DNA of 64,000 nucleotides. Origin: Lytechinus pictus. Taxonomy: Eukaryota. The position numbers and the translations under genes are program-made. Under the pieces are notes generated by a model, which was not told the origin of the DNA, did no database searches, and worked only from the letters and a program-made list of their open reading frames with translations. Shown piece after piece: positions 3,897 through 58,400 of this stretch. Location of the stretch: assembly GCF_037042905.1 (NCBI RefSeq), contig NC_087248.1:17918001-17982000 (forward strand). Direction: 5' to 3'. The number at the start of each line of letters is the position of its first letter. Within the stretch, counting starts at the first letter, position 1.

Positions 3897-4027
3897 NNNN
3901 NNNNNNNNNNNNNNNNNNNNNNNNNNNNNNNNNNNNNNNNNNNNNNNNNNNNNNNNNNNNNNNNNNNNNNNNNNNNNNNNNNNNNNNNNNNNNNNNNNNN
4001 NNNNNNNNNNNNNNNNNNNNNNNNNNN
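3897..4027. other. Assembly gap (N run)
   Basis: Run of N. Confidence 1.
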
Positions 4028-9709: not shown

Positions 9710-10335
9710 AGTGGTGTTAGGGGTGGTGGTGATGGGAGTGGTGATGATGATCAGGATGACAACGGTAATGATGATGATGATGACTCTAGTGAGAATAATA
9801 GCGGAGACGATGTAAATAATTATGGTTACGACGGCAATGATGGTGAGAATGATAAAGACGATAATAATGATGATGATCTGATGATGATGATTATAATGAT
9901 GAAGATGGTGGTGGTGGTGGTGATGATGATGACGATGGCGATGATAGTGAGAGTGATGACTTTTTTTATTGATAAGGGTTATGATGGTGAGATTGATAAC
10001 GGTAATGATGAGACGATGATGATGGTAGTGATGATGATGACAAAGATGATGATGACGATGATGATGATGATGATGACGATGATGATGATGATGATGACGA
10101 TGATGGTGATGATGATGATGATTATAGTGAGAATGATGATGATGAGGAGGAGGATAGTGAGGATGATCGTGAAAAGGATCTTGATCATAAAAAGATAATG
10201 GTGATGATGATCATATTGAAAATGATGACGATGTTGATGATTATGATGGTGGTGGTGATGATGATGGTGGTCATGATCATAATGAGAATGGTAATGATGA
10301 GGATGAATATGATGATAACGATAATTACTATGGTT
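9710..10335 (+). repeat. Degenerate (GAT/GGT/GAC)n trinucleotide microsatellite
   Basis: Visible GAT repeats; the source of the spurious poly-D/M/I ORFs. Confidence 0.95.
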
Positions 10336-15544: not shown

Positions 15545-17661
15545 TTAAAGGAGAATGAAACTCTTGGAGCAAGTTAGCTTTTGTGAAAGCAGAAAAATCA
15601 AATAATAAGATCAACAAAAGTTTGAGTAAAATAGGACTAGAAATAGAAGAGTTATGAGCATTTGAATGTCGAGATCACTAATGCTATGGAGATCCTCCCA
15701 CTGGCAATGCGACCAAGATCTATGATGTCACAGATGAACAACTCTCCCCTTTTGGACACTGAAAATATACCTCAAAACATCTCTTTTTGCTCATTCTAAT
15801 CATATGACAAACGATTCATCAATGATATTTTTTTTTTTCTCTTTGCCTCTTCCTTGAGGATTTATTGTTTCAAAATATTTACATATATACATATTTACAT
15901 AGGAATAACTTTTTTTCAAGAGTCAAATGATATAATATTTATAACAGGAATTACAATATATCAATAATTTTCTTGACCTCTAATACACAAAATTGTTTAG
16001 ATCCGTAATGATTCAAATAAAACTTCAAATATGAAACAAATTCCGTGATCAATCTCGTATTGCTATGATTTAGATTCTGAAGGTTGCATTTTACATAATG
16101 ATTATAAACTACAAACTGAGCAACATTGATCGTCAAATTAATAAGTTCAAATTTTGGGTTTTCTATTTTATACCCAATTAACAATGTTTTCATAGTTATC
16201 ACCATTTCTTCTTTGAAAATGAAATAAATCATCCTCGATATGATTTTCCAATAAACTTTTATCTTTTTGCAAAAAAACAGAAAATGGCCAATGGTCTCGA
16301 TTTCATTACAGATTTCGCATTGATTTGTATTTACAATTTTCCACTTGAACAAATTGTCTCTAGAAGGTAATATTTTATGTAACAGTCTGAAATTGAATTG
16401 CTTAATTCTGTTATCTTTTATCTTTTTGAATTTAAAATGAAGGATATCTTTCCAAACTAAATTTTCTGGCAATTTTAGTTGTTTTCCCCAGATGTCCAAA
16501 ATATAAAAATCGACCTTCTTTTGTTGTAAAAACAACACATAATATTGTTTTGCTCTGGTGCAAGTTATATTAATACGTTCACCAACAGATGTATCAATTT
16601 CTTCTTGTTCTGAAGACTCATTTTGCTTTTCTTTCATCGTACTTATTTTTTCAAGCCAATGAGCAGGAAATGCTTTTTTTAATTTTAAAAATCTAAAACT
16701 AAATACTAAATTATCAACATCAAAAAAGTTTCTAAAAAATGATATATCTTTCCATTTACCTTTATATACAACTTGTTTAACATATAAAATACCAGCTTCT
16801 TTCCATTCCTGAAAATTTAAAGGTTGTCCATTTATTGTAATATTACTATTATTCCATAATGTTTCACGATATATATTTTCAACATTCTGCTCATCTAAAT
16901 ATCGTAATTGAGCCCATGTATATAGAAATTCAATATAAAACATTGGTAAACCCTTTTTTCGACAAAGCTTTAACATGTGTTTTGGATGACAATTCATTTG
17001 AAAACAGTAGGGGATTTCTCCTATGTAACTTAACCAAAACGAGAAAAGTGTTTTCCAGACTGCATCATAATTATTAAAAAAGGAATTTATCCAAGACAAT
17101 ATAAGTGATTTTGATTTCGAATATAGATCGATCATACCAAGACCACCTTCAACTATCGGTCTGACACAAATATTACGTTTAACTTTTTCACGCTTTGAAT
17201 TCCATAAAAAGCAATACATTATCTTATGTAAACCCTTGCATATATAGTCTGGCATTGGTATAACCGAACCAACATAAACGATTTGAGGCACAAGTAAACA
17301 TTTTATAATAATTATTTTACCATAGCATGTATATAGCATAGCATCAATGATATAATGTTGTGAAATCTCTGTACTTGTCCTCTCATAAAGAGAACACCTC
17401 ACCTTGTGATAGACTCTATAAAAGTGAGAATATAAGTGCAATAAGTACTAAAGAAATGAGGGAGTTGTACGTGTGTGACATCACATATCTTGGTCGCATT
17501 GTCAATGGGAGGATCTACATGGCATTAGGGATCTCAATATTCAAATGCTCATAACTTTCTTATTATTCATTCAATCTTCCTCAAACTTTCAACAATATGT
17601 TTCTTTGATTTTTCTCTTTGATATGGATTCAGCTGGTTTCAAGTGTTTCATTCTCCTTTAA
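15545..17661. mobile_element. TTAA-flanked Kolobok/T2-like MITE interrupted by a LINE
   Basis: TTAA|aggagaatgaaac ... gtttcattctcct|TTAA; related copy at 21012-21476. Confidence 0.9.
15829..17341 (-). mobile_element. 5'-truncated L1/Tx1-clade non-LTR retrotransposon (post-RT region plus C-terminal zf-RVT), with poly(A) tail and 12-bp TSD
   Basis: Uninterrupted frame of about 455 codons: GKIIIIKCLLVPQIVY, FLWNSKREKVK, EGGLGMIDL, LWNNSNI, CEICNEIETIGHFLFFC. AATAAA and poly(A) at the 3' end (15829-15866). TSD catcaatgatat at 15817-15828 and 17342-17353. Confidence 0.92.
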
Positions 17662-23262: not shown

Positions 23263-24503
23263 GTTAGTAAGTATCAACATAATTATTGTTTAGATCATTA
23301 TTTTAGAAAAAAACCACGTGATTTTATGAAACTAATAAGGATATGATAGACTCGATGGGAATGTGTACATACAATAGTTTTATTGCCTTAGATACGTTCG
23401 AGTTATGTGATTGATATTGGCATTGAAATGATAATATAATATTCTTGATATTAATTGAAATATACTTGTTTAACAATTTAATAAGAAACTGTGTGAGTGC
23501 AATTACTTTTTTTAGTTGATACAGATTTGCATTCAATCAACTTTGATCGGAATCAAATCCATGGTTGAGGTGTATTTCGAGATAATAAAAATGGTTGTAT
23601 GTCCGGGGGGGAGGAGAGGGTTGACAACGAGGATGGATGATTGGGCGAGCTTTGTAGAATTATTGATTTGGTAACGAAAGAGAAGACGTTGGTGATGGTG
23701 GGGATGTTGACCTCCGCCATGGATAATGATGACGGTAAAGCCTATAGTGATGACTCTAGTGATGATGATGGAAATTTTGATGGTGATAGTTATGACGACG
23801 ACGACGATGATGCTGACGATGATGGTGACAGTGGTGATGATAGTGATCACGATGGTGATGGTGTAAATGTTGATTATGATGATGGAGGTATGGTGATGAT
23901 TATGAGGTTGATGGCGATGATGATAATTGTGATGTAAGTGGTGTTAGTAAAAGTGGCTAAAGTGGTGGTGGTGTTGGTGGTGGAGATGNNNNNNNNNNNN
24001 NNNNNNNNNNNNNNNNNNNNNNNNNNNNNNNNNNNNNNNNNNNNNNNNNNNNNNNNNNNNNNNNNNNNNNNNNNNNNNNNNNNNNNNNNNNNNNNNNNNN
24101 NNNNNNNNNNNNNNNNNNNNNNNNNNNNNNNNNNNNNNNNNNNNNNNNNNNNNNNNNNNNNNNNNNNNNNNNNNNNNNNNNNNNNNNNNNNNNNNNNNNN
24201 NNNNNNNNNNNNNNNNNNNNNNNATTGTGACGAGGGGTAATCGTGTTAATTGTGGTGATGACAGTGATGATGATGGTGATGAGATTGTGATGACGACGAT
24301 ATGCCGATTTTGGTGATGATCTTAATAGTGGTGATGATAACAAGAAATTATCATGACGATGATGATGTGGTGATGCCAATGATGCTGCTCTTAATGATTA
24401 TCACGATGTTAATGTCTATGCTGATTATAATGGCAATTTTCATGATTCCTTTATCTTTGATACTCATTATATCATACATCTTTTGTCTTTCATTTTGTTT
24501 CAG
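23263..24503 (+). other. Probable 5'UTR intron of IgSF receptor 2
   Basis: Donor cag|gttagt and strong acceptor ttttgtctttcattttgtttcag| 124 nt before the ATG; the intron contains the GAT array. Confidence 0.55.
23690..24420 (+). repeat. Degenerate (GAT/GGT)n microsatellite spanning an assembly gap (N 23989-24223)
   Basis: Visible trinucleotide repeats on both sides of the N run. Confidence 0.95.
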
Positions 24504-24627: not shown

Positions 24628-26169
24628 ATGGATGCTTATAGCAGACCGTTTCATCTCGCATTGTTCTTGCTATCATGGTGGGATGTATCACTCGTGGCGA
24701 GCCAATTTGTTCTCCAGCCAACAGACGTAGCGGTTGTTTTTCCTCGAGCGGTAACACTTGACTGTGTCTTCGATGGGGACATAGTATCAAGGCCGGTTTT
24801 CTGGCACCGCTACACCGGCGATCCCCCGGTCAAGGAAGAACTCTACAACACGCGAGACAACCGCTTTTTCATTGCCGGTGACCGCAACGACGGTCATTAT
24901 AACCTCTTCATTAACGCGACGCGGTTAAGCGATAGCGGGCTCTACGGCTGCAGTTACGGAACCGCGTCAACGCGGAACGCGACGCTGACTGTGCTTCCAA
25001 CATCGTGGATACCCGTGTGCGAGAAGACACCGGAAAGTGAGCGGACGCTCGTGGGTGATAGTGTCGAACTTGGGTGCTCGTCTACGGGGTCGTCGTCGAC
25101 TTCGCTTCAATGGCTACGTAATGGTGCGCTAATTGGCCCGGGTAGTATAACACGCGATGACACCATGGTGAGTGTGTCACACTTTGAAATAGTACCCAGT
25201 GACTCCTCTATCACCTTCACGTGTAATGCCTCCCTACCAGGGCTCGACCAGCGCTACCAGTGCACGCTCGGTCCGTACCCCGAGAGCGATTCGAACTCGG
25301 GAACCACTGCCCTGATTCCGTTCATCATCGTCGGGATTCTTAGTGTCGTGGTCATCCTCCTCTTTGTCATCGTTCTCTTCATTCTCTTTCGACATCGACG
25401 GTGTCGTTTTTGTCAGGAACAACCAGTGGAGCCCCAGATGGTTCTCGATGCCGAGGCCATCGCAGCTGGTCGTGGCTTTACAACCATAATCCGAGATGAT
25501 GACGATGATGATGGCGATGGCGATGAGGCTGTCGGAGGGGATAGTGTTGACAATCCCACCCTGAGTGACAGCCAACCAGATCTCTTATCGTCCATTATCA
25601 GTCCTTCAACCATAGCTCAGAAATCCCCCAACAGCACCTTACGTCAAAACATGAACCACAACAGGGAATCGGTGGCGCCGAAGAAGCCATCCGATGTCGA
25701 AAAGCTTCGACCTTCTGAACTCAGAAGAATGAAGAAAAAACGCACGCTCTCTAGCAGATCGGGGCAATCTCAACGAGAACCATCACCTTCAGTCTCGTCA
25801 TCAACCTCTTCAAGCAGGGACGCACCAAAATCAACATCCCCGGTGAGTGTCGATCACAATATAACTCCACGCAGCACGTCTACGACATCAATCGACAATC
25901 AAATTGACCAGTCACAGCCCGGAACGTCACAGGGTACAAACCATTCCGGTATTAACAATCTCGATGCTTCGGTCGGGAGGAAAAACAGATTCACAAGAAA
26001 AAAGAACTCTAGGAAGTCGTCAAGTCCATCGGGCGCTTCATCTACTTCCCCTCGGAACATCTCCGAGCCAGGAAGCAGTGCGACGCGACAATCGGAATCG
26101 GTCATCTATGCCGAGCTAGACTTCAGCAAGAACGTTGGTATGAATATACTCGGTGATGAACATTTGTAA
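24628..26169 (+). CDS. IgSF single-pass receptor 2 (signal peptide, two Ig domains, TM, long Ser/Thr/basic disordered tail, C-terminal ITIM-like VIYAEL); intronless CDS
   Basis: 513-aa ORF. Ig motifs QFVLQP..VTLDC..FW..YNLFINATRLSDSGLYGC and VELGC..LQWLRNG..FTCNA. TM LIPFIIVGILSVVVILLFVIVLFILF followed by RHRR; ends ..ESVIYAELDFSK.. Confidence 0.93.
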   Translation: MDAYSRPFHLALFLLSWWDVSLVASQFVLQPTDVAVVFPRAVTLDCVFDGDIVSRPVFWHRYTGDPPVKEELYNTRDNRFFIAGDRNDGHYNLFINATRLSDSGLYGCSYGTASTRNATLTVLPTSWIPVCEKTPESERTLVGDSVELGCSSTGSSSTSLQWLRNGALIGPGSITRDDTMVSVSHFEIVPSDSSITFTCNASLPGLDQRYQCTLGPYPESDSNSGTTALIPFIIVGILSVVVILLFVIVLFILFRHRRCRFCQEQPVEPQMVLDAEAIAAGRGFTTIIRDDDDDDGDGDEAVGGDSVDNPTLSDSQPDLLSSIISPSTIAQKSPNSTLRQNMNHNRESVAPKKPSDVEKLRPSELRRMKKKRTLSSRSGQSQREPSPSVSSSTSSSRDAPKSTSPVSVDHNITPRSTSTTSIDNQIDQSQPGTSQGTNHSGINNLDASVGRKNRFTRKKNSRKSSSPSGASSTSPRNISEPGSSATRQSESVIYAELDFSKNVGMNILGDEHL

Positions 26170-28640: not shown

Positions 28641-30648
28641 AAGTTGGTGAAAAAGAGAAAGAAAACAAAGAACAAGAGACGAAGATGATTTACTATAGGT
28701 GNNNNNNNNNNNNNNNNNNNNNNNNNNNNNNNNNNNNNNNNNNNNNNNNNNNNNNNNNNNNNNNNNNNNNNNNNNNNNNNNNNNNNNNNNNNNNNNNNNN
28801 NNNNNNNNNNNNNNNNNNNNNNNNNNNNNNNNNNNNNNNNNNNNNNNNNNNNNNNNNNNNCTTTCTCGGAAATAAGCAAAGAAACAAACGGGGGGAGGGT
28901 ACTTTGCGCCCACTTTATTGCAATATAGAACGATTGTCCCATTAATATTAGTTACCTTATATCACGCTTATTTGGTCAACTCTTACTTCGAAATACGATA
29001 TTAATCTGAAATCACAATTCAAAGTCGGTATATTAAGGCTTAAATGAACAGTTGTTAGCATAAATACAAATGTAAGTGCATTTGGAACGGGTATATTATG
29101 CAGACAATTTTATCCTGAATAAACAGAATCATTATCGTCCACTCTTTACAAAAGATCAGTCAATAATACACATTCCTAATAGAATAATTGAAACGTTTAA
29201 TATACCAAGGTCTGGTTTGTTATCAGAGAACAAATCATATTTACATATCGTTTAGCTGTGGTATTCATGGTGATATTCATCTCGGTATTTCCTCCCCCAT
29301 TTTTCTATATGTCTTGGTTTCTCTCTTTCCTCCCCTCTCTCTCCTCCCTGGCACATTCACACAACCAGGCACCCTCACACACACACACACACCCTCAACC
29401 ACCCACACCCATCCGTCACACCCTCAAACACAGTGGCGTAATGAGTCCAAATTTTTAGGGGGCTAGATTTGGCTGATGGAACATAGTTATAACAAGTTGC
29501 AAACAAACGAAGCGAGAGAGCAAAAAGAGGGGGAGATGGCGTGGGGACACAAAGAGCCGAAGAGAGGGAGAGAGTGAGAGGGGGAGGGGTGGAGGGAGTT
29601 ATTTTTTAAGTTTTGTGTTCAAGTTTCATATACTTACACCTATCATTTAATAATACAGATAATAATACTAAAACGCATATATATGATATCATCGACACAA
29701 AATGATTATGCCATTAGAGTGAGATGACAAGCTAAATATCAAATAAAAACTGGACGATAGTATATTTTACATCCCAAATAGATGATAATGATGACATTTA
29801 AATCAAAATTCGTTCTATTAGGAGTAAGAATCAACAAAATAATACAACATATATATAAAAAGAAAACGGAGGTGGTAATATATACCTATTAAATTCAGAG
29901 CTATTAATTCTACAGTGCTATAATAATCTACTTGCAAGAGAGTCCCTGAAAGTTTCAATAAAATAAAAGAGAGGAGTGTTCTATTGGGTGTGTCGATTTA
30001 TTCATTCCGGTCGTTACGACACAAAAGTCAGAACAGATAATCTACAGAGTAATTGACATGGTTGACTACCCCAAACCATTTTTTCCCCGCAGCTCAAACC
30101 TACACACACACGGTCTTTACTGATCGAGTGCATTCGCTCGTTTGCTTTCTTTATTCAAATTCAATTGTCCCATTGTAGAATCTCGTCTATTGTACAAAAG
30201 GGTGAGTCAATTGTATTGTTGAGAGAACGGTTGTGAGTGTATAATTGTGGGAGTGCGATCTACGTAAGACAGCCGGTGAATTTATGGGGAAATTGAGGGA
30301 AAATCTCGCGATGCGCGAGAAATGAGCTGGTGGTCTACTGTACACAAACATACACCGTGCATACAGGAGCGCCGAATGAAACCGGTGGATTGGCGTTGGA
30401 TTCGTGCTACCGCCACTTGTTGAGGACATTATGTGCGTTGTTTCTTCCAAGATACCAACAAAAAGGTGCAAATTTTACGTTTGGGATATCACTTTTCGAC
30501 TTACAATGGGAGGACTAAATGCAGAGATGTTCTAATGCGCATCTTAATATCTAGAAACGACTCATTCTTCGAGGAAAACGTCACATGTTGACATAATTTC
30601 CCCTATCACTTTCGTGTGTGGTGATTCTGACAGCTGCCTACATCAATC

Positions 30649-31557
30649 ATGGCGTCAACCAGTAATCATTTTTTGACGCTTTTATTTTCTGCTATGTGCT
30701 TTATAAGTTGTTCCTCAGGACAGTATTTCTCTGTGCAGCCACAAGATACAGAAGTCGTTGTCGGGAGCAAAGTTACGATGACATGTCGAGTGTTTAACCG
30801 TCCGGAAGGCTCGCTTGTGTATTGGATAACGCCGGCTGCTACCAACGACTTCATAGGACCCGATTATGATGTACCTTCCCGCTATATAAATAAATACGAG
30901 ATCATTGGTGATCCAAGAATCAACGACTATAATCTTGTGATCAATGATGTAACGGCTGAAGATGATGGAGACTATATATGTCTTTTGTTTCAGCCTGGAA
31001 GGGGAGATCTGAACGTCGCGCCGACGCAGATTGCCCAGACAAGAGAGGCTTCGTTGACGGTGGCGACGTTGAGCCCGACCGGCGCACCGGCTTGCTGGGC
31101 TTCCCCAAGGCGCACTGTCCATGTCGGGTCAGACATCACGATCTATTGCGCCTCTATCTTTACCAACAACTCCCTGACGTGGAATCAAGATTCGAGTTCG
31201 TTGACGTCGTCGTCTAACTCGACAGCGACGATCCCGACGTTAATCATGACGACGTTTACGGCTGAAGCTTCGATGAACGAGGCACGGTTCACCTGCGCGT
31301 CGGAGTCGGACCGCAACAGACAGTGTCAGATCGTCCTCGATGTTACCTTCCCTCCCGAAGTCACAATCGAACCTGTTGGCGAGATCAGGGCTGGTCATGA
31401 AGGGCGGTTTCGGTGCTCGGCTACGGGAAACCCTAATGTATTCGTCTATTTTTGGAAGTACAATGAGGAGGTCATCGAGTACAGATACCATCGTCGATTC
31501 AATAGGGCTATCCTTGAAGAGAGCAATACGATCTTGGCCCTCCCTGATATGGATGAG
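30649..31557 (+). CDS. IgSF receptor 3, coding exon 1 (signal peptide, Ig1, Ig2, first part of Ig3)
   Basis: ATG in atcATGG context. QYFSVQP..VTMTC..YW..YNLVINDVTAEDDGDYIC; ITIYC..LTW..FTC; FRCSATGNP..YFW. Phase-0 donor GATGAG|gtaata. Confidence 0.9.
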
Positions 31558-31999
31558 GTAATAATGACGAATTTAGACCGAATTATGTTATTCATAATTA
31601 TATCACGTGAATGTGATAATCCTCGCCTAGAGTCAGAGTGGTAACATGCAATGACTATGAGATGCATTAATTTGATGTTTTTTTAAAGCTCCCCTCCCCT
31701 AATTCATGTCAAGACTGCAATCATTAATTTTGATATTCATTTACAATTTTCATGTAGATCTACACAAGTCATGTAGGTCTACTCTCACAGACTACCGTGG
31801 GTGATTGTGGTATTGTTAAATATGAATACGAATGCCATAATGACGGGGGTTATTTCTATCTTTCTGTCCTATTCATTTTCGTCTGATGATATTGCTTACT
31901 GCTCATTGATCACATACAAATTTATCCCGCCATCATCACTCTAATTTTGACGATTTCAACTTGGCACATGTAGATCCCAGCCCAGAGTATCTTCCATGT

Positions 32000-44716: not shown

Positions 44717-47197
44717 CTAATGCTTTTGCGCATGTGTGTGTACTTGGTCTCTCGCTGGACCTTTCTATAGACAATGCATGCATAGACTGTTACATATTCG
44801 TACATGCGCATAAAAGGAATGATTCATTTTCAGATCTACACACATATTCAAATGGTACTCCAGGCTGAAAAAACAATCACCTCTATTCGTTGAATAATAA
44901 TAAAGATAAGGCATGAATGTGCAATGAGCAAGCTGATGATGTCATCAACCTGCTTTTTCATTTGGGTTCTCCTGATATCAAATTATTATAATTATTCAAA
45001 ATGCTCCTAGAATGCAAGCATATGATGTAACTTCTGAAGGTTTAGAATCTGTAGAATATGATTAATGAATGAGAGAGAGGGAGAGAGACCAGCAATGCTC
45101 TAACTCATTTTATAACAGAAATATTGTCATAAAAAATCATGAGATTAAAACAGAGGAAATGAAACCACGAGCTCACTCATTAAATTTTCATGATGAAAAA
45201 CATGGAACTGCTCTGAAATATTGTAAAACTTGAAAATTCCCTCTGATTTTGCCTGTTTGACTCCATTTTAAAATAATATTTTTAGCCTATTAGTACCCTG
45301 ATACTGGACACAATAAAGAAATGAAACTGCAAATGTTTTTCTTTTCTACAAAACTTGCAAGAAGGTTATATTTCTACTCACTGACAAACTTCAAGCAATA
45401 CTTGACTTTATTGTACACAATGTACAATGTTTACACACATTTATTCATCAAATTGAATAGCTGATCATACAATTTTGGCAGTTCATTATTAAAAAAAAAT
45501 TAATCCACATTATTCTTATTAGTTGAAAATGATGAAATTAAATCAATTTTGCATAAAGTAAACATTCACTAAGTACACAATGATAGCTTTTGTATTTTTC
45601 TTTGTTGTGTTTTTTGTCCCACGATCGACACAGGGTCTATATGAGCAATAACACTGCAGCTTTTGAGAATACTTTTCAATTGAAATCGAAAATTTTTTGG
45701 CATAATATATGTGGCTTTGTTATTGTAGAACAAATAGAACGCCTCTGACAGTCTTGCCTGCATAAGGCAGTTCAATAAAGCAGCAATGCAGACAATTAAA
45801 TAAGAGAAAAATATCAATTCATAATGAAATCTTACGTTTGTTGACCTCATAATGACCTTACACACCTGGACTTTTAAACATTTCATTCATTTCATATCAT
45901 TTGTGATATTCAATTAACAATCTCATAAATTTCATTTCATTTGATTTAATATCTTTTTGAAACAATGATCAAAATATTAATTCTCATTTAAGTTTATTGT
46001 AAATAGTCCGAAATAACCTTTGACCTTGACCAAATGCAAAATGGAATCCAAGTACTGTAGTTCAAAGAATACCTTGTTATGAGGAGAGAAACATCCGCAA
46101 ATCTCTTTATGAGCAAACCTATTAAGTAACATAATGTGTAAAGGCCATGCAAAAAAAAAAATGAATATGCAATGTAATCATAAAAAAAATAAAATGGTAA
46201 GAATTCATTCAAGCATAAAAATGCAGCATATCCTTAGCCTATAAATAATGAACATTTCTAAAAACTAGTGACATGGTTGATGTCAAAATGTCAGAGTTTA
46301 CACTCTTTTGGCAAGACCAAAAATAACACAATGCAGAGGGGAAAGTATAAGCAAAGAATTCCAAGAGGAGGAAAATCTAAAATTATCAAGTGATAAGTAT
46401 AGAAAGAAGTTGATCAATCAAATATGTAAAATTTAAATGGATTTAAATTCAACTTCAAATTCAATATTATTCCAACAGATTCCCAACTGCACAGCTGAAA
46501 TTTATGCATCCGCTATTACCAGATCAAGAATGTGTTACAAACCTTAATGCTAAAATGTTGAATGATGACCTTTTTGTTGATTACATGTGTGGGGATACAA
46601 GTAGTTTGTTACATGATTTACCAATTCTCATGTCAGAGCGCGAAGCCTAGCGTAGCATTGTTAATTCATTCTGGGATGAGTCCACTTTGAGGTGTAGTGT
46701 AGATGACCTCTGTGACCTTTGCCTAGTGACCTTGTGGCCCTAAAATCTAATGAGATCATTTTCATTCACATAGGCATACATGAGCCACGTTTGCTAGTAA
46801 TAACCCCAAAAGTCAATCCGTTATTACAAGAAAGAGATATTCTCAGGTATATAACTGAATCACTCCCATAAATGAGCAGAGTTTGAAGTATAAACCCTCA
46901 AACAATTCTTTAGTTATCATTCAATGTATATAATGCCCTAGAGCTCTGACCTCGTGGCCCAGATTATCGTCATTCTCATATGCTTGCATTACATGAGCCA
47001 AGTTTGAAGTTGAACCCTTGAATGGTTCTTTAATTGTGGCAATAACAAGAATGAGAACGGGATGGATGGAAGGAAGGACAATCTGTAATGCCTCTGGGAA
47101 CCACCTATGGTTGGCAGAAGAAGAAGAAATATGTTGTATTGCTGTCATGCTATGTAGCAACTTAACACTTGGGATGAGCTAATCTTCAAAGGAAGTC

Positions 47198-47623
47198 TTA
47201 GGAACATGAAAGAGTTGGAAGATCGATGTAGGAGTAGCTGGAACTGATGACCTGGGTCTCCACAGGGGCATGATCCGGGAACGCAGTTACAATGTTTTGG
47301 TTGACCGGTGGTGGACGGTGTGTCAGGTGTGACAGCACTGGATGTTGCGATAGATGAGTTGCTTGTCCGGGTTGGTGTGGTGGAGCAGCCGGTTGCCTGG
47401 CTCCCTGCTGTTGTTGCTGCTGCTGTGGTGGCTGTGGTTGATGTTGCTGGTGTTGATGGCGGGGTTGTGGTGCGGGCGGCGGTGGCAGCGGTGGTGGTAA
47501 TCTTAGGGGTGGTTGATGATGCTGCTGCTGCTGTTGTTGGTGTTGTGGCTGACTGGGTGGTACTAATTGTTGCCCGGATTGCTGATGTTGGTTTGGTGGC
47601 GAGTCTTGTTGCTGACCCTGAGT
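47198..47623 (-). CDS. GIN-like gene, terminal coding exon 6 (Gln/Pro/His-rich low-complexity tail)
   Basis: Acceptor cacttcctttaccag|ACT is in phase 0 with the preceding exon; open to TAA at 47198. Confidence 0.75.
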   Translation of the reverse strand, partial: TQGQQQDSPPNQHQQSGQQLVPPSQPQHQQQQQQHHQPPLRLPPPLPPPPAPQPRHQHQQHQPQPPQQQQQQQGARQPAAPPHQPGQATHLSQHPVLSHLTHRPPPVNQNIVTAFPDHAPVETQVISSSYSYIDLPTLSCS

Positions 47624-48480
47624 CTGGTAAAGGAAGTGGTAGAGCAATAAATTAACTACGTGCCTTAGGCTTAGCTACATTTAATACAAGTATCATCAGC
47701 TCGAACTGAACTGATCCAAAGTACAAGGGCTCATTTCAAAAAGAGTTGCAATCATAACCAACTCCAAAAATCAACGTACCAATCACAAGCACACATTCTT
47801 TTTTTGAGCTGTGTTTAAATGCAACCCTTTCTGCTATAGGCCTCTGGTTCTTAAGAATTCACCCACTTCACTCATACAACATTCAAACCACTAATTATGA
47901 CGCAAAGGATCATTTCCATTCACTGGTTAAGATCAAATGGCTATAGCAATTCAGCTCAATTTCACACCTCATTTTCTATTTTTTTGTAAAAAAAAATTAT
48001 TGAAGACCCTTATTTAGTGATTAATGATTTGAAATGAAATTCTCCCTTCATATACCAAGTTAATCTTAAGATCATGTAAATTTGAAGCAGGGTTACACAA
48101 CAATGCATATTGGATTATTGCCAGTTATAATACAATGATCTGACCTGATGTTTTATGCACAATATAAAAGAGTGATATCATAGCATAAGTTCTATTAACA
48201 GTATTGAACATTTGATATTAATAACTAAATGCGAACGGAATGGTGACAAACGACAGGCCATATCTCACTATTTCCTGTAAAAATCAGTAACTTGATCTCA
48301 TTTTAAATCCAATATTGATGGAATCCACATTCTCGTCGTCCAGCTTTTACAAATTTACCTCAAAAATCAAAATCACCATGATGGAGGTTTTGATTTGGCT
48401 TTTAATGAGGACAATATGGGTCCCCCAGGTGATAAACTTGAAACCATTCTACAAAGAAGATGAATATTTTATATACTTAC

Positions 48481-48661
48481 TGTACAAGTTGAATTGTTGG
48501 TTTCGTCGCCTCGCTTTATCCTCCTATGATGACGCAATCTTGCGTTGCCAAGGATACGCCTCGCGTCTTTGAGCAGAGTCCGCTTCCTTTCACCGGCCTC
48601 TTGGACGTGATCTTCGTATGTCTCACAGTTCTGATCTGTGTTGTTTGGATCATACGGTGCT
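48481..48661 (-). CDS. GIN-like gene, coding exon 5 (basic helical region)
   Basis: Acceptor ctacaaacag|A (phase 2) and donor ACA|gtaagt. Open frame RAPYDPNN...ERKRTLLKDARRILGNARLRHHRRIKR; not in the ORF track. Confidence 0.8.
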
Positions 48662-48824
48662 CTGTTTGTAGCAAAATTAAAAACAAGAAAACTTGCATAA
48701 CTTGACCTTTGTAATTTGAAAATTTGCCCAAATCATGGGGTCAAATACATGAGAAATGCTAAGCTATGAATGCACGTACTGTATTATGGTACTTTCCATT
48801 ACAGAGTATGCATTTTATGCTGTA

Positions 48825-49136
48825 TTAAAGGTATTGTTTAACTTTGTGAGCAGCCGATTTAAAAAATTCTCAAACCAAGATAAAACATGTGTACAAGTGC
48901 ATATATTAGAACTAATAAACCCTGAAAACAACCATTATTGAGAATGAAAAGCTAAACCTACAAGGCAAACCCCGATTTTGTAAATAGGCGTCTTATAGAC
49001 GCCTAATATTTCAATTTTTGAAGCACTAAATAATTATTTTCGAACCAATTTTTTCTGGGCTTCATTTTTGTAACATATCACAGACACAGGTGACAAAATT
49101 TTTAAAAGTCAAACCAATGTTAACCAATCACTTTAA
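48825..49136. mobile_element. TTAA-flanked Kolobok/T2-like MITE (intronic)
   Basis: TTAA|aggtattgtttaac ... gttaaccaatcact|TTAA. Confidence 0.7.
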
Positions 49137-49933
49137 GCCAAGCTGGAGTAAAGAGTTACCTAAAGCTTACAGGAGTATCTATTCCTTGGAATGCTTGTGC
49201 GCCGTGGGATGACCTACTGGGTAAAAGCTTGGGTAATAATGACAGCAGTGCCTTGAGCACTCTGACGAGTGGATATCTGTGCTAGATGAGCTTCACTATA
49301 TACGTGTATTTCTACATCTCATTGCAAGTTTAAATGTATACAATAAGTAGCCCTGCATTATATGCTTTTATGTAATATACAAAATATGATATTCCTCAAA
49401 CAATCAATTTTTGTTCATGACGAAAAACCTCCATTTGAGAACACTATACCCCAGTTTCCCTTGCAATAAATTCTCTTCTCCAAGTACGACAAACCCTACT
49501 GCCCCAAGCATGCAATGTAAGTATCAAAACACCTGTTTCTTGACCTCGGTCCGAAGATAACACAACAGCCCGGCATATACAGTCACAGCAGGGGGCCACA
49601 CACGATGGGATGCATGCGCAGCGCTGAGTGCGGACGACCCGGTATAAGCATGCCGTCATTTCTATTCGCTTACTTTCCTTATTTCGAGGTCAATTTTCTT
49701 CGTTCGAAATTAAAAATGGACTTAACATTGAATTTCTGAATACAATATGCCTTTGAAAACGTGATTAAATATCAAATACAATAATTTCATTCAGAAGGTC
49801 CTACTACAGGCAGAGAAGTCTTACGTAATAGCACAGCTGTTGTTTATCATTTCGTCCTTGGCTCAACGCTCATAATCTGGCCTGTGGAGGTGAAATTGAG
49901 ACAGCGGGGATTACCTGGCCAAGCGGGGTTGAT

Positions 49934-50075
49934 CAGGCGGGTGTTTCATAAAGCTGTTCGTAAGTTAAGAGCGTGATCCTGTCTTGCGGTAAATGGTACA
50001 CACCATTGGCGATAATCACCAGTCGCTCTTAAAGTCGCTCTTAACTTACGAACAGCTTTATGAAACGGCCCCCTG
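49934..50075. mobile_element. Short hairpin MITE (intronic)
   Basis: gtttcataaagctgttcgtaagttaagagcg / cgctcttaacttacgaacagctttatgaaac is a perfect inverted repeat. Confidence 0.88.
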
Positions 50076-50183
50076 GGCTTGGAAATGATGTTTTAGATTT
50101 TCAAATGCAAATGGGGTGAAATACCGCAGTTTGCAATCTGAACTGCGGTACGTTCTCAAACGGGGGTTTGACGTAATGTTTAC

Positions 50184-50474
50184 CTGTTAAACATGAGCTG
50201 GAACGGTGTGTAACCCATGATAGGGTGCTTGGTTGTTCTATACTGGTACATGGCCCAGTCTATGTGCTGGTCCCAATCATCTACATGGTTCCGCGTCAGG
50301 GCGAAGAGGGTCTCCATCACCGAGTTGCAGTAGGGTTCGTCCAGGGTGACGTCCTCTGGTTTGTCTGCGGCGTGGAATGTCTGGTTGGTCCGGCTTATGG
50401 AGGAGAAGTCCTCCTGGATCTCCTGGACGAAGTCGGAAGGCTCATCGTAGAACGTAAGCCGTACCCACCCTAGC
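50184..50474 (-). CDS. GIN-like gene, coding exon 4 (second half of integrase core)
   Basis: Acceptor aaaatgcag|G and donor AACAG|gtaaac (phase 2/2). WDQHIDWAMYQYRTTKHPIMGYTPFQLMFNR matches the Gypsy/GIN integrase WD..L....AY....H..TG.TPF.LMFGR motif. Confidence 0.9.
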
Positions 50475-51107
50475 CTGCATTTTGAAATATTGATAAATTG
50501 AAACATTGAAGTCATTGTACATTACTACAAATAACAGTGTATTCATTTAAGTTAGTCTACTGTTAGCAGACGGCCTATCTCTCAACACCATCATGGCTAA
50601 ACCCACTTGGTCTAATATTGATTTGGTCTATATGCCACTTGGTCCATTCTCCATATGGGCAAACTCTGATTAGTCTAATCTCATGCCAAGATGGTCCAAA
50701 GACTAATCCTCATTATACTTACTCCTTCACACTTTGCCAAATGAAACGTTGGTTACTAATCAGCTCATCTAATCATATCTATAGACTATTGATTATTAGA
50801 CCAAGTGGCTATTAGACGAAATGTGAATAACCTAACTGGAAATTACACAAAAAGGTAAAATTGTGTCGAGTAATCACAAATTACTTCACATGGGAGTATT
50901 ATATTGTGGAGTAACAATAAAGCATTCAGCTCCTGCCATTCCTTTCTTTGTTTTGAAGTTCAATTATTTGAGCCATTTCATATAAACTGTACACAAAATT
51001 TATACAACGAAATGAAATTTCCATGGCATTGCTTACTGCATTTACAGATAATAGAACTGCCAAATTAATAACTATTTTTAAAGATTGGCAGTCACATAAC
51101 CACATAC

Positions 51108-51265
51108 CTTGTCATCACAGAGTAGAGAAACCGAGCTATGAGGAGAGACGATGCATAAGGTAGGGGCATAGCTTCCGACCACTTGGTGAAGTAATCCCAT
51201 ATAACAAGCAAGAATTTGTTGTCTCTCACCGTCCGCTCAAACGGCCCTAGGATGGCGACCCCTGC
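51108..51265 (-). CDS. GIN-like gene, coding exon 3 (first half of rve integrase core)
   Basis: Acceptor ttttctacag|GCA and donor AAG|gtatgt. AGVAILGPF...NKFLLVIWDYFTKWSEAMPL. Confidence 0.9.
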
Positions 51266-51727
51266 CTGTAGAAAAACAGGAGAAAGAGCACTTATGAGAT
51301 TACTCTTCATTCATTAAAATAGGGTATTTGTGTAGCGCACATTCCCACCTTCGTATGTGCTCAAGCTGCTCCTATATCCCTGAAAAAGACTACTAGTATA
51401 ATAACATGAGCTTGTTTATTTATTAAAAACAGTAGCACAAAATTTTAATTGTAATACATGTAAATAATACTCATAATTATAATATAAAAAAACTTTTATA
51501 GGCTCCACTGTTTTCACACTGCATATTTCTCAAGATGCTGATTCGATTATAACCCAGACTTTTGATATAAAGGGGCGCAAATAGCAAGTTTGACAATAGA
51601 AGGGTGCAGATGGCAATTTTCTTAGATTTAGCTGCATTAATAGGGCAATTCTCAAAATATAAGGGGGGATGGGCATCCCTTGTGTCCCCACCCCCTGAAT
51701 CCCCCACTGGATATCCTGTTCAAATAC

Positions 51728-51933
51728 CTGTTTCCAGACCCCTGAACCATACTGGACCCTTCCCGTCTTTGGTGGACACCATCCAACCGACGTATTCTCC
51801 TTGGTTCTAGGAGCCGAGTTGGATTGACAAACAGCGCAATTCCGCACAAAATTGATGCAATCTTGCCCAACTGTCTGCCAGTAGTACTGCTCTGTGACTC
51901 TTTTGTGAGTGACATCACGGCCTAGATGGTGAC
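51728..51933 (-). CDS. GIN-like gene, coding exon 2 (HHCC integrase zinc finger)
   Basis: Acceptor tccattccag|GT (phase 1) and donor CAG|gtattt. HHLGRDVTHKRVTEQYYWQTVGQDCINFVRNCAVCQ. Confidence 0.9.
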
Positions 51934-52844
51934 CTGGAATGGACAAAATTAAAAAAAAGTTTAGCAAATGAAAATTCTTAATTTAATGATCAATTAGACA
52001 CTCAATTCTGCTTATAATTGCTTATTGTCTAAAGGTAGGTCAGGTCAAGGCTCTACGCAACACTGCCGTAATTGCATGGGCTCAAAACCTGCACTTGCCA
52101 TGCTTTCATAATAATACCCTTTTAAAAAATTCAAGATTCAAGATAATATTAATAAGATTTAATTGTTATTGGTAACAATAATGGACCAGACAATAATGAA
52201 TTTCAACAATAAAAGATTGACTAAATATTAATTGCCACCACTCATCTAGATCTATGTGGTGGCGGATAATGGAAGTTGCAAACTTGCATTAGCTATTGTT
52301 ACCTACAATAACAAATTTTCAGGTTTTAGGAAACCTCTATTTTAATGGTAAGGGTGGACGGTACACGCACACAGGCCTCAGTCTGGGGAACTGTAGATTT
52401 ATGACAAAAATATGAAAATGGCCATGTAACTTAGGAAATAGGGATCTCTTTATATTTTGTGCAGCCCCCCCCCCTTCAATTTTGAAAAACTGTGCAGCCC
52501 ACGCATAAGATATTTTGAAAAACTGCAGCCCACGCATAAGATAAGACAAAGCCTGAAATTGGAGTTTGGGTCTCGGAACTTGATGAACAGATGAATGTCT
52601 TTCCACAAACTACATGTATAGGCCTAGTATCATTAACATAATATTTGAAGCACTGTCCAACTTCTGGAAAGATTAGGGCAAGAGGTGACCCCCCCCCCTC
52701 CCATCACATCAGCATCAAGATCAAGTCTCAAGTCAAGACAATCAATCACTTGTCAGTCACATCAGTTATCAAAATCAGACAGGCCCACGCATCATTAATT
52801 GAACATTGATGAACATGATGACTGACCAACATGACGAAACATAC

Positions 52845-53268
52845 CATCTTCTTCACTGATATGATTCGTCATCATAAGATTCTTCTGTTCATCAGGGTCG
52901 CCAATGACCTCCAGCCATTTTGGTTTCGGCAGTCCATGTTCCAGTTTCCCATACTGCAAGCGGTCCTCTGTCTCGGGGTGCAGCCGAAACGTCTTCGTGC
53001 GACGTCGCAGACTCCTCCGAAAGCTCTGCGAGCATCCTTTCGGATACTCTCGATCCTTCAAATAACTCTTGATTAAAACAATCTGTTCCTTGAAACTAAG
53101 CTCACTGAGACCTCTTAATTTATATTCAACGGCTGATTTTGCTCGCTTTCGTTTGCGTTTATCTACCCGGACAGGACTTGGAGATGGCGACGAGGTGTCA
53201 TCCGCATCTGAACTCTCGTTGGAGTGATCATCATCGTCTTTGCTGGACAAATTCCGCTTGGGCGCCAT
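52845..53268 (-). CDS. GIN-like (Gypsy retrotransposon integrase-like) gene, coding exon 1 (acidic/Ser region, KRKRKR NLS, GIN-type N-terminal domain)
   Basis: Acceptor tttgacag|gaaatATGGCG and donor GAT G|gtatgt. YLKDREYPKG....RRSLRRRTKTF...LQY...EVIGDPDEQKNLMMTNH resembles the GIN1/Ginger N-terminus. Confidence 0.88.
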
Positions 53269-54739
53269 ATTTCCTGTCAAATGATACAACGGAGATTATG
53301 GTAAGCTACTTGCACAAATATGAACCGAGACCTATTTTTATTTTTGGTAGTTCTGGCCCGAGTTCTGGTTAATAAAGTAAACAATCCAAACGCAATTTCC
53401 ATTATTAATGTCATTCACTCGATGTTTTTTCTCTTTAGCTTGAATCAAACTATCAATTCAATCTTTTTTTACATCTTATCTATACAAGGTGACAATTTTT
53501 TTGTTTAACTGAAAAGTCTGTTTAAAATGACCGAGTTTAAATACAAATTCATTAAAATTACTAACTTAGTGTTTGTATGATTAGAAATACATGTATCTGC
53601 TAAACGATCCTGGCAGAAATGTGTGATTGCTGAGAAATTGGCCTAAATATAAATATGGCATTCCATTCAGCCAGGTCTTTCAGCCAATGTCCCACATGTG
53701 TTTATCTGTGTGAGTGACTTCAGCCGTGGTACTTTTTCACCTTAGATTTCATAATTTGATACAATAAGGTTGATGTAAATAGCCCATTCCAGATTCTTCA
53801 TGATATGGTACCAATCTAGCTTGATTTTAAAGACTCTGTCGTGAAATCATTGCTTGCTACAATTCTGAGTGCAGGATAGTGAGTTTTATTGCATAGATTA
53901 TTTTGCACCTCTATGGCGTACCATAGTAGCATGTTCATCAAATCTTTGTCCGTTTGATTCCTTTGTCTGTCTGTTGCTTTCACGCGCGGGCGCGGCGCAT
54001 ATTTCTAATTCGAGCTCTGCATGCTGAGTGGGGGTGGGGTCATGGAAATAGGGGGTGGGGTGCATGGTGGGGAAGGGAAGCCAGAAATGTGGGTTACAGA
54101 CCCTTTCTACTATTTTGGGGGAAAAACGTAAAGTTAGATTATTCTTCCAAAGTGATCTTCAGCGTGTTCAGTCAGTTGGCTTACCTCGCTTTTTTTCACA
54201 AAGTTCTTAAAATCTTGGGGCCTGGGGCGCTTGCCCCCCTAAATTTTTCATGACCTAGAAAAAAAAGGAAAAAGAGAAAAGTAAAATATGATATTAGGAT
54301 ATTATTTTCTGAAATAGTTTGTCAAAATCTATCACAAAATTTGATTTTTGTAATATAATTTTTGCTTGCTCGCTTCACTCACTCGCATTTTTTCGTGTGT
54401 AAAAAGTAAATTTTGCCCGATTTGCCATATCGGGCCCCTCAAAATCTTTGGCTCGTTACGCCACCGCACGCATGTGGCGCAGACAACAATTCAATCATTT
54501 TTGTAGGACCCTATTTTCTTCAGTGGAGCGAATATCAGAAATACAAGTAATGTTATAGCCATATTAGGATAATCATGCTTTTTTGAAGATGCACATTTTG
54601 ATTAAGTCTGATAAGCGATGGGGGGGGGGGGGGGGGGAGGGATACAGTAATTTATATAAACCACGATTTCCATGTTTATAAGTGATTTGGCTAAAGCGGA
54701 GGTAGTTAACGATCAATGCTTGTTTATTTCAACCCTGAA

Positions 54740-55485: not shown

Positions 55486-58400
55486 CCATTTTACTCTATA
55501 TTCGCTTTCTGCCTGGATCCCCCCAATTATTATCATTTTTAGTGCTTGCCACCAGACCTGCAGTATATTTACAAATCTAAAAGTGATACTCTGCCAAATT
55601 ATTTTTGCCTACCCATAACCTTATGATTTTATTAATCGAATTTTCATTATGATTAAGGCTGTGCTTGGCACGCGTTAATGGCCACTTTGGTCCATGGTCC
55701 GACTTTGGAACAAATTGCGTTCTGCTCATTTATTTTTCTGAAAATGTTTTTTTATTTCAGGTTCAAATTCTCTGTATGAATACTAATATAACAATTTTGG
55801 ATGATTGCAAGCTTTTATTTTGGAGTAAATGCCAAATTGGTGTCAAATCACTAGCCAATCGTGCGATTGCTATGACGTCATTATTCAATTCGCTTTTGTT
55901 TTGATAAGGATGCATAGTCACAAATTTGAACATACGTATTCGTATGATGATTTCCAACTTTAAACAGTAATGTTCCATGTCTCAATATTCGCGTTAAATT
56001 TTATTAGTTTTTTTTTTTTACCAATCGTAAGGTGTGTGGTTGCCTTTCAGGACACTGGGAATTATTATTTTTTTTTCTGAGGGGGGGGGGGTCAATAAAA
56101 AATAAAGGTCCCTTCGGTCCCGAGAAATTTGAAAGGAAAAAAAAAGGTTCACTACAAAATTGATGTCATTTCGGCTAAATTTCTCAATTTTTGAACACCT
56201 ACCACAATACCAGGGGGTGCTGCCGATGGAGAATAGCACCCCCGCTTCCCAGCAAGACCTCACTTCAGAACTCTGATCTCACGTCCACCAATGTAGCACA
56301 GCGCCATCTAGTGTTATAAAGGGAGATAACATCTGATAATTTTTAACGAATCAGTATGCTTTGGTGGTAAACGTCATGTCACTGGTGCTGCGGTTTTTTT
56401 CTTTTTAACATTCCTCCCCGAAATTGTCCAAAAATATGAAAAACAGAATCTATACTTCTCAGCTACCGCGTAAGATCATCATTATACTCTCAAGTTTTTG
56501 TTACAGGATATGTGTACACATGGACGACACATAGGCCTAATAATTTAAATTTCCGAACGACAAGAAAAAGAAAGAAATTGGGAAAAGACATCATCAGCTC
56601 ACTCATTGCAAAGTCGTGAATTGCATATTTTTGCAGGTAAAATGCATACAACTCTTTCCATAAAATAATGGAAAATCAGTTTCGCAGACTGGTCAATTTT
56701 AATTTTGTTTGTCTTAAGTTTGATTGTCAGAATCTTTAAAGGCGAAAAAATTCTGGCCAGAAATCCTTCCCGAGTCCCCGACTTCGGTAAATCTTGCTGG
56801 ATTCGCCCAAGATTTTTAGCACACACCCAATTTACTACTGTACTAGGTCTATATTGGTAAACTAAACATGTATATAAACATTATTGAAACATTTCCTTAC
56901 TTTGTTTGGTATCTTGACAGTATTATGCTTTTATTCTTGATTGTTGTTCCTTATCCTCAAATTTAGAATGTGACGTTTTGTTGGATCGAATTAAATAATC
57001 AACTATTTGAATTTGAACGCCTCGTATCATCACGATCATGATCGGAGAATCAATATCATGAAAATGGTGTGAAAAAATATAACCCCTTCTCGTTTCAGGC
57101 GATAAATAGCATTAGGGCCTAATGCGTGAATATGAAATACATCCTGAACAATGAAATTCGAAATTAGGGTTAGGCAGAAAGGATAGCCACTCAAATAGAG
57201 GAATGTATCAGCTACTGCGTACAGATGAGGATGGGGCCTCGGAACCCTCGGCAAAGTGTTCACGACTAAGAATTAAGAAAAAAGGACAAACAAAAAGAAA
57301 CGAACGCAAAAAAGGTGACATATACTATTTTCGGAATATCATTTTTTTGCTGGTTTGCTTCGCTCACTTTTTTTTCTTTAAGATATAAGCCGCCGTATAT
57401 AAGCTATATCTGACCCCCCCCCCCCTCTCAATTTTTTTGCTTATTACGCTATTGGTAACATCATCCTCAATATGCGAAGAAGCTTGGTGATCAAGCGATT
57501 AAAATTGATTGTCTTTGCAATGTTTTACCAGTGAAACTGAATATTTTACTTTACAATTAACGCCGTATATTGTCAATATTTTTCAGTGAAATGACGATTG
57601 TCTGTGTACTAGGCAGCGACCGATCAAAACATGTGTTCACTAGTGTTGGGATCCATATGACCATCCAAAATGGTAAAAAAAAGTAGGGCCCTGAATTATG
57701 TAAGTTTTCCAGAAGAGATGTTGTGGCAATTTTATGCTTAAGCGAGCGAGACAACGTAGCGACCGAGATAAACTATTTGCTGTATTCTCCAGTGATCGTT
57801 TTGAATCAACACACGGTATAGAATGACACACTTAAATGAAAAACTATTCGATTTTTTTTCACATTAGTGAAATTTTTTCTTTTAAATCCACATCATGGTA
57901 TTCATTGAATAAGACAGTACAATTGAGTGGTGCTTTTGTGGGAGCGAGCGTAACGATCGAGTAAGACAATGTGTTATTTTTACGTGTTTATTGAAACTAA
58001 TGGCGTCTTTGACTTAAATATGACATAAAAGAAGACAGTGTTGTGAAGGTATATACGAGTATATGCATGCACGATGGATAGCGACTGAGCGAGATAATTT
58101 ACTGTTTTCCCTAGCACAGTGAAACTCAGCATTTCTAACACATTCATTGATCCACATGGGACTACAAGCGAAAACTCGAATGTATATTTTAATCATGTAA
58201 CGTTGGCCTACTATAGCTTAAACTATAGTACAGAGGAGGCAGTGACAAACAAGTGTGTATTACAAATCAGTTACGCTAGATATTTTGAAACCACAACACA
58301 TTATATAGGCCCTATTCTTTTCTTGCATGATTTTCTTTTTCTTTCTTTCGTTTTCTTCTTTGTTCACATGTTAACAGGGTATAGGGCATAATGATCCCTG

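Follow-up and report, generated by a model that had tools for sequence, protein, structure and literature searches.

Introduction

Ginger1/GIN transposons have terminal inverted repeats (TIRs) of 40-270 bp that end in TGTNR, are flanked by CCGG/CCGT duplications, and encode a transposase with a DDE catalytic triad and a GPY/F domain, often with OTU, Ulp1 or PHD domains (PMC2836005). The host genes GIN1 and GIN2 are old and conserved, and their origin has been placed in vertebrates, with tunicate relatives considered tentative. GIN1, which is reported to retain the DDE residues, has been reported from amniotes only. GIN2 has been described from jawed vertebrates, including fish, amphibians, birds, reptiles and marsupials, and its tunicate relatives are only candidates (PMC3424704). 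Ciona intestinalis GIN-like gene 1 (XM_002130131.1), which has no TIRs, was suggested to be a host gene that arose from an element like Ginger1-5_HM (Bao et al. 2010). Imagin of malacostracan crustaceans is a tamed Ginger1 transposase encoded by a multi-exon, single-copy gene (PMC12863088). No echinoderm member is mentioned in the literature that we covered, which did not extend to Marin (2010, MBE). Here we analysed a 64-kb stretch (the window) of Lytechinus pictus chromosome CM073229.1 (GCA_037042905.1, at about 17.92 Mb). The minus strand of this sea urchin sequence holds a predicted gene for an integrase-like protein, which an earlier note on the same DNA had read as an integrase gene possibly tamed independently in echinoderms.

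The urchin gene appears to belong with vertebrate GIN2, and the Ciona GIN-like gene is probably in the same group. GIN1, GIN2, the candidate Ciona genes and Imagin were known already, so that an echinoderm member is what is new, and not the system. It is probable that the urchin gene is a domesticated GIN-type gene. The explanation that we favour, with moderate confidence, is a fixed, single-locus host gene of L. pictus that descends from an intron-containing Ginger1/GIN transposase and has its affinity with GIN2, one domestication ahead of the separation of echinoderms and chordates being the likeliest origin. That the urchin gene, the Ciona GIN-like gene and GIN2 are orthologues that go back to one domestication in an ancestral deuterostome, over about 550 million years ago, has close to an even chance in our judgement.

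Like the GIN2 proteins of Pelobates (P0193) and Leptobrachium (P0194), the urchin protein appears to come from a multi-exon host gene, keeps the HHCC finger and the YPYY region, has no GPY/F domain and has a degenerate catalytic site. GIN2, however, lacks the second catalytic Asp (D2) and usually the Glu (E), whereas the urchin protein keeps both and lacks only the first Asp (D1). It also has an additional acidic N-terminus with a pattern like a nuclear localisation signal (NLS) and a 141-residue Gln/Pro-rich tail, and is 561 residues long compared with about 410 in GIN2. Ciona GIN-like gene 1 differs in having Glu at D1 and Asp at the E position, its relation to the urchin gene being judged from the published alignment only. 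GIN1 is likewise a Ginger1-derived, intron-containing, single-copy integrase gene with an HHCC finger, but it has been grouped with other Hydra elements (GINO / Ginger1-5-like) and does not have the motifs common to GIN2 and the urchin in the published alignment. Imagin resembles the urchin protein in keeping the YPYY region, the H2C2 finger and the core fold, and in having no inverted repeats; its defunct DDE site and its disordered region would also have counterparts in the urchin protein. It belongs to a separate lineage and phylum, has lost D and E, is encoded within an intron of MMUT and, in oocytes, is found in the cytosol. Ginger1/GIN transposons of the Hydra, sponge and P0029 types are of the same family and clade, with YPYY region, HHCC finger, core and introns in the coding sequence; unlike in those elements, TIRs with target duplications, an intact DDE triad, and GPY/F, OTU, Ulp1 or PHD domains were not found at the urchin gene.

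Structure of the urchin gene

The earlier note had proposed six minus-strand exons, and this model was reproduced. All five introns are GT..AG introns with CAG acceptors and phases 1, 0, 2, 2 and 0, and the joined coding sequence of 1686 nt encodes 561 amino acids with a single, terminal stop. Past the proposed donors, the stop-free run around each exon extends by just 1-195 nt. Exon 1 (52845..53268; codons 1-141 plus 1 nt) encodes an acidic, Ser-rich N-terminus, the NLS-like patch, the YPYY-type region and H136. Its ATG at 53268-53266 has an A(-3)/G(+4) context and follows an in-frame stop 27 nt upstream. Residues 1-56, which form the acidic and Ser-rich part, have no counterpart in the Hydra and GIN2 proteins. 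They include KRKRKRAK, a classical basic nuclear-localisation pattern (residues 37-44, 53160-53137) that is also absent from those proteins. Exon 2 (51728..51933; codons 142-210) contains the remainder of the HHCC domain and the linker to the core. Exon 3 (51108..51265; codons 211-262 plus 2 nt) and exon 4 (50184..50474; codons 263-359) encode the first and second parts of an RNase H-like core. Exon 5 (48481..48661; codons 360-420) encodes a post-core linker/helix region containing ERKRTLLKDARRILGNARLRHHRRIKR, and past residue 365 it was matched in the multiple alignment to the post-core helix of the Hydra and GIN2 proteins.

The pairwise alignment to Pelobates GIN (residues 66-360) runs without gaps over junctions 1-2, 2-3 and 3-4, and that to the Hydra GIN1-like protein (residues 61-365) runs without gaps over junction 4-5. 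These alignments therefore give independent support for the splice sites concerned and indicate that no exon is missing between them. The model of six exons is upheld, and homology supports it over junctions 1-2 to 4-5. Exon 6 (47198..47623; codons 421-561 plus stop) and the exon 5-6 junction are predicted from an open low-complexity frame and a CAG acceptor. The predicted product of exon 6 is a Q/P/H-rich, low-complexity tail of 141 residues (26% Q, 21% P and 9% H), of which the last 54 residues are non-repetitive. The exon is built on a CAG/CAA/CCN-like repeat (repeat family D1, not the catalytic position), and such sequence is naturally open in several frames. The Q/P-rich tail described in the earlier note therefore stands as an open frame of that composition, but homology gives exon 6 no support. 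Retention of intron 5 would lead to a stop 9 nt on, that is, to a protein ending three codons past exon 5. A pattern scan gave a candidate polyadenylation hexamer at 47029..47034 on the minus strand, about 164 nt past the stop codon.

Conservation of exon 4

Exon 4 was compared with 1.84 billion cluster representatives. One close match (P0001) was found, and all others had at most 49% identity and less than 50 bits. A word-indexed search with the same exon, under its length filter, gave P0001 alone. P0001 is an open reading frame (ORF) of 148 amino acids on an 18-kb contig of an ENA metagenome assembly and comes from a species other than L. pictus. It is 72-73% identical to exon 4, with 90% positives. 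The match stops no more than 1-2 residues from both splice sites of exon 4, the CAG|G and AG|GT contexts are preserved, and the translated flanks of P0001 have no similarity to the urchin flanking sequence. We simulated neutral evolution by randomly mutating exon 4 to the amino-acid divergence of P0001 in 5000 runs. Between exon 4 and P0001, 17 of the 27 replacements are conservative; the neutral expectation is 7.8±2.3, and none of the 5000 runs reached 17. A stop arose in exon 4 alone in 75% of the runs, which extrapolates to a probability of about 3e-4 for a stop-free full coding sequence. Judging from this conservation and the outcome of the simulation, at least exon 4 appears to have evolved under purifying selection after the two species diverged. 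The case for a gene over a relic depends chiefly on this result, which comes from one exon and one other species.

The locus could instead be an immobile relic, a dead single copy of a Ginger1/GIN transposon whose frame is open by chance and which is not a functional gene. Several observations would agree with a relic and weigh against a functional host gene. An annotated echinoderm orthologue did not turn up in the protein collections searched, including NCBI nr, and no spliced product covering exon 4 was present in them. The one related sequence covers just one exon, the gene structure is a prediction from DNA and homology, and no homologue of the low-complexity exon 6 tail was found. The loss of D1 and the degenerate active-site loop described below would also be expected of a dead copy. 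Against this, a 561-codon frame is intact over six exons with five canonical introns, exon 4 is conserved while its flanking introns have no translated similarity, the neutral runs behaved as described above, and transposon termini were not found. We therefore consider a relic very unlikely, and favour a host gene.

Integrase domains and the catalytic site

The earlier note had suggested profile searches with Integrase_H2C2 and rve. With the exons scanned as separate pieces, Pfam Integrase_H2C2 was found on exon 2 (E=1.6e-10). Pfam rve was undetected on these pieces, the core being split over exons 3 and 4. The HHCC finger is intact, as the earlier note had stated, and consists of H136, H143/H144, C174 and C177. 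A region of about 40 residues upstream of the finger has the Y-P...F...Y pattern of the YPYY region defined by Bao et al. (PMC2836005), with Y75-P76 in exon 1. Exon 3 retains D234, the conserved non-catalytic Asp of vDyFTKW, and exon 4 contains the conserved DDWDQH...YTPFQLMF block. The GPY/F module was not found, in agreement with the earlier note; 69 C-terminal query regions had no match, not even a remnant, outside the core exons. Neither an OTU nor a Ulp1 domain gave a Pfam match on exons 5 or 6.

A canonical Gypsy integrase served to anchor the columns of the catalytic triad, as did, by way of Hydra P0068, the integrases of prototype foamy virus (PFV; 3L2Q) and Ty3 (7Q5B). P0068 aligns with PFV integrase at E=1e-34 and with that of Ty3 at E=1e-27. 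The urchin protein is similar to the PFV and Ty3 proteins in having an HHCC N-terminal domain and an RNase H-like core; it differs in that Ala takes the place of the first carboxylate, the active-site loop is altered and a C-terminal SH3-like domain is absent. The loss of the first catalytic Asp that the earlier note had claimed is borne out: D1 is occupied by Ala214 (minus strand, codon GCC, 51256-51254) in the context AGVAILGPF, and a single A-to-C change accounts for Asp to Ala. D2 is kept as Asp273 (minus strand, 50446-50444) in the context FYDEPSDF. E is kept as Glu309 (minus strand, 50338-50336) in the context TLDEPY, and exactly 35 residues lie between D273 and E309, which is the canonical spacing. 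The claim that the glutamate motif is unrecognisable was thus not upheld. Just the flanking R and N are changed around E309, and the related P0001 carries EPFNN. In the active-site loop, YHPQTNG is replaced by ADKPEDV and sDnG by YDEP. The description of the protein as catalytically degenerate holds for D1 and this loop, but it is overstated, as D2 and E are kept at canonical spacing.

Integrases require all three carboxylates for metal-dependent catalysis. With Ala214 at D1, we infer that the urchin protein would not be an active recombinase, on the basis of one A-to-C difference and the changes in the loop. The intact D2 and E, together with a loss of D1 by one base change, speak on the other side and leave the loss of activity as a conclusion drawn from residues. 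They also bear on the possibility of a still-mobile Ginger1/GIN copy with a working transposase, which the canonical D2-E spacing and the intact HHCC finger and YPYY region would allow. However, D1 is Ala, and GPY/F, OTU and Ulp1 domains were not found. The gene spans 6 kb with long introns. Ginger1-type ends (CCGG/CCGT+TGTNR) were not found near the gene, and a check of its flanks for TIRs with a 4-bp target-site duplication, which the earlier note had proposed, also found none. The window holds one copy of the gene and no second one, and the 1.84 billion representatives hold one cluster at 50% identity. A mobile copy therefore has almost no probability, and a fixed host gene is favoured. The copy count applies to the 64-kb window, which limits what it contributes to the single-locus part of our explanation.

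One pair of sequences was considered as TIRs and rejected. A 32-nt inverted match (84%) between 44912-44943 and 56587-56618 has no extension and no TGT ends, and its E value of 0.001 is marginal. This pair brackets the gene at a spacing of 11.6 kb and is unique in the window; a weaker direct third copy is present at 45155-45181.

Relationship to the Ginger1/GIN lineage

In pairwise comparison the urchin protein is most similar to the Pelobates cultripes protein that databases call 'gypsy retrotransposon integrase 1' (31% identity over residues 66-360; 160 bits, E=2e-48), and the Leptobrachium orthologue of the Pelobates protein is also among the best matches. The Hydra vulgaris 'gypsy retrotransposon integrase-like protein 1' follows with 146 bits (residues 61-365, E=5e-43). 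Collinear identity to Pelobates GIN and to the Hydra GIN1-like protein is 30-31%. The reported host ranges of GIN1 and GIN2 indicate that the amphibian proteins are GIN2 despite their database name. A search seeded with Hydra P0068 gave Ginger1-like and Gypsy proteins and no vertebrate GIN, and one seeded with the Pelobates protein added just three amphibian proteins. The amphibian genes that carry the label 'gypsy retrotransposon integrase 1' include that of Pelobates cultripes (L003 = OW240916.1; P0015, P0193). P0015, which carries a duplicated C-terminal block, resembles a wrongly built model of a paralogue. The sole match in a scan of JGI metagenomes was distant, with 34% identity to the end of exon 4 (L010, Ga0115555_1001790, 10001-10150).

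Trees were built from the finger and the core with 75 rows, 240 columns and the LG+C20 model. The GIN proteins sampled were those of two amphibians; GIN from fish, bird, reptile and Ciona and GIN1 were not included, and Hydra families were few. Together with the Hydra GIN1-like protein, an OTU-bearing protein and proteins from sponges, of which one has a PHD finger, the urchin protein falls within a 20-row clade (97/85). This clade is the Ginger1/GIN lineage, apart from the Pol-linked Gypsy integrases, which agrees with the spliced gene of GIN-type origin suggested in the earlier note and not with a fragment of Gypsy Pol. A gene that came straight from the integrase of a Gypsy/Ty3 long terminal repeat (LTR) retrotransposon and gained its introns later would also match integrases. 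The 15 Pol queries match exons 2-4 only, by their integrase parts, and identity to the canonical Gypsy integrase is 29%. The placement in the Ginger1/GIN clade, the presence of the YPYY region and the best pairwise matches to GIN proteins argue against such an origin. Reverse transcriptase, RNase H and protease were not found in the 64 kb, and no long direct repeats of the LTR type flank the gene in the window. The earlier note had likewise seen none of reverse transcriptase, RNase H, LTRs or Ginger-type TIRs nearby. A direct Gypsy/Ty3 origin is thus highly improbable, and descent from a Ginger1/GIN transposase is preferred.

Probable affinity with GIN2

Within this clade, the two amphibian GIN2 proteins form the sister group of the urchin protein (100/99), with a shared stem of 0.9 changes per column. 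Since the urchin and GIN2 lineages are both long branches, three controls were run. When either partner was removed, the other was still found beside the same subclade, which consists of P0029-type Tara elements and the OTU-bearing group. A partition with the non-catalytic N-terminal part again joined the urchin and the amphibian GIN2 proteins (97/91), as did a distal-core partition (99/97). The short proximal-core partition gave no support, yet the amphibians were still the nearest rows. When the urchin protein was forced together with the P0029 group, the approximately unbiased (AU) test gave a cost of 15 log-likelihood units.

P0029 represents the nearest transposon lineage to the urchin and GIN2 in the trees. 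Its family (L004-L008, Tara and Logan marine contigs) is of GIN/Ginger1 type with an intact DDE triad, and the same exon of 254 amino acids is present on five contigs, bounded by a phase-1 acceptor right before GGHFG and a phase-0 donor after PIELK. The P0029 element is probably an active transposon of a marine animal.

The Pelobates gene, with seven introns, and the Hydra gene, with five, were reconstructed from their loci. Urchin intron 3 and Pelobates intron 4 coincide exactly, each interrupting in phase 2 an AG|G codon for the Arg in [TY]R[LF]G. If introns are modelled as uniformly placed, one or more such coincidences would arise with a probability of about 0.03. Near this position, Hydra has a phase-0 intron three codons away and the P0029 element has no intron, so that the exact shared intron is absent from both. 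Pelobates intron 2 coincides with Hydra intron 2 and is absent from the urchin gene. Bao et al. term three introns universal. The introns are compatible with a common origin with GIN2 and do not settle it.

The alignment in Additional file 3 of Bao et al., the sequences of which are not in our trees, was compared by eye. Three derived states are common to the urchin protein and all four GIN2 proteins: DF in place of EF 4-5 residues past D2, Pro in the motif RTxx[NH]P, and either GHHLG or GNHLG. The urchin and Ciona intestinalis_1 proteins have in common DEPS[DE]F, RT.KHP and an insertion of xxET within the YPYY region. These motifs, read by eye, may serve as leads to a common ancestry. At D1, the GIN2 proteins of lizard, fish, chicken and frog in the same alignment have D, E, A and V (PMC2836005). 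Because GIN2 varies in this way, the Ala of the urchin and Pelobates would be parallel changes, as is also implied by PMC3424704.

The earlier note had raised an independent domestication in echinoderms as a possibility. In that case, a Ginger1 transposon near the progenitor of GIN2 would have been tamed in echinoderms or echinoids, and the likeness to GIN2 would come from related sources and parallel relaxation. The literature treats GIN1, GIN2 and Imagin as separate Ginger1 domestications, so repeated taming is the norm, and annotated proteomes of other invertebrate deuterostomes yielded no orthologue. The pair of D2 and E that the urchin protein keeps has been lost from all GIN2 proteins. 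Further observations count against a shared GIN2 origin. Four of the five urchin introns are not common to Pelobates, and intron 1 lies one codon from the phase-1 intron of the P0029-type transposon. In the AU test, the urchin with the P0029 group was disfavoured but not rejected (p=0.069). Ala at D1 is not a synapomorphy of GIN2. The trees contain amphibian GIN2 only, and both lineages are long branches. On the other side, the GIN2 sisterhood with its long shared stem, its recurrence in the N-terminal and distal-core partitions, the exact intron that neither Hydra nor P0029 elements have, and the derived motifs that the urchin protein has in common with GIN2 and Ciona_1 speak against an independent domestication. 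The tree, the partitions and the shared intron make a shared origin with GIN2, to which we give about an even chance, at least as likely as an independent echinoderm domestication, and the latter is not favoured here; we regard it as rather unlikely. Orthology to GIN2 appears likely, and it is not established, because of the thin sampling and the AU value.

Possible function and significance

Of the presumed ancestral transposase, the urchin protein has kept the YPYY region together with the zinc-binding HHCC domain and an RNase H-like core, and the transposon termini, the GPY/F domain, the first metal-binding Asp (Ala214) and the active-site loop have been lost or changed. Strand transfer of the DDE type should then no longer be possible, as judged from integrase biochemistry. 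The protein might be a non-catalytic one that binds nucleic acid or assembles complexes through its zinc domain and core. GIN2 and Imagin have been interpreted along similar lines (PMC3424704, PMC12863088). The basic patch KRKRKRAK could direct the protein to the nucleus, where it is probably located. If exon 6 is real, its disordered Q/P-rich tail may make contacts with other proteins. A role as a chromatin regulator or transposon inhibitor is speculation from the NLS-like patch and the retained zinc finger.

If the urchin gene is closest to GIN2, either the domestication moves to before the echinoderm-chordate split, or the gene adds to GIN1, GIN2 and Imagin a fourth case in which a Ginger1 transposase was tamed independently. 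In the case of a single deuterostome domestication, GIN2 would rank among the oldest animal genes known to have been tamed from a transposase. An earlier state would then be preserved in the urchin copy, with D1 lost and D2, E and the D-35-E spacing kept, and an ordered series of DDE decay after domestication could be described. The partly preserved A-D-E site allows a comparison with the more decayed sites of GIN2 and Imagin. The urchin L. pictus is readily worked with in the laboratory, so that studies of expression, localisation and knockout are practical in it.

Surroundings of the gene

The earlier note had reported insertions of miniature inverted-repeat transposable elements (MITEs) and short interspersed elements (SINEs) in the introns. 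A MITE-like palindrome inside intron 4 (49934-50075), with 40-nt arms that are 93% complementary and a 62-nt loop, bears this out for one insertion; no other was verifiable from the window. A stretch of 84-94 nt at 54302-54385 recurs at 2974-3066 with 77% identity and is probably a dispersed repeat.

Neighbours of GIN2 in fish include ABCB9 and VPS37B (PMC3424704). Neither was seen in the window, although detection by ORFs is weak for spliced genes, and the recognisable neighbours were immunoglobulin (Ig)-domain ORFs and a non-LTR remnant. No matches to tRNA or Rfam were found. The non-LTR remnant is an ORF of 496 amino acids on the minus strand (15951-17441) with a zf-RVT domain; it is probably left from a non-LTR reverse transcriptase and is unrelated to the integrase gene. 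Three long plus-strand ORFs at 5906-7453, 24628-26169 and 30649-31644 encode 515, 513 and 331 amino acids, respectively, and carry Ig, V-set, I-set and C2-set domains. Upstream of the integrase gene in the window, they seem to form a cluster of genes, or of large exons, of the immunoglobulin superfamily. Three runs of N at 3897-4027, 23989-24223 and 28702-28860, either gaps in the assembly or masked stretches, are all distant from the gene.

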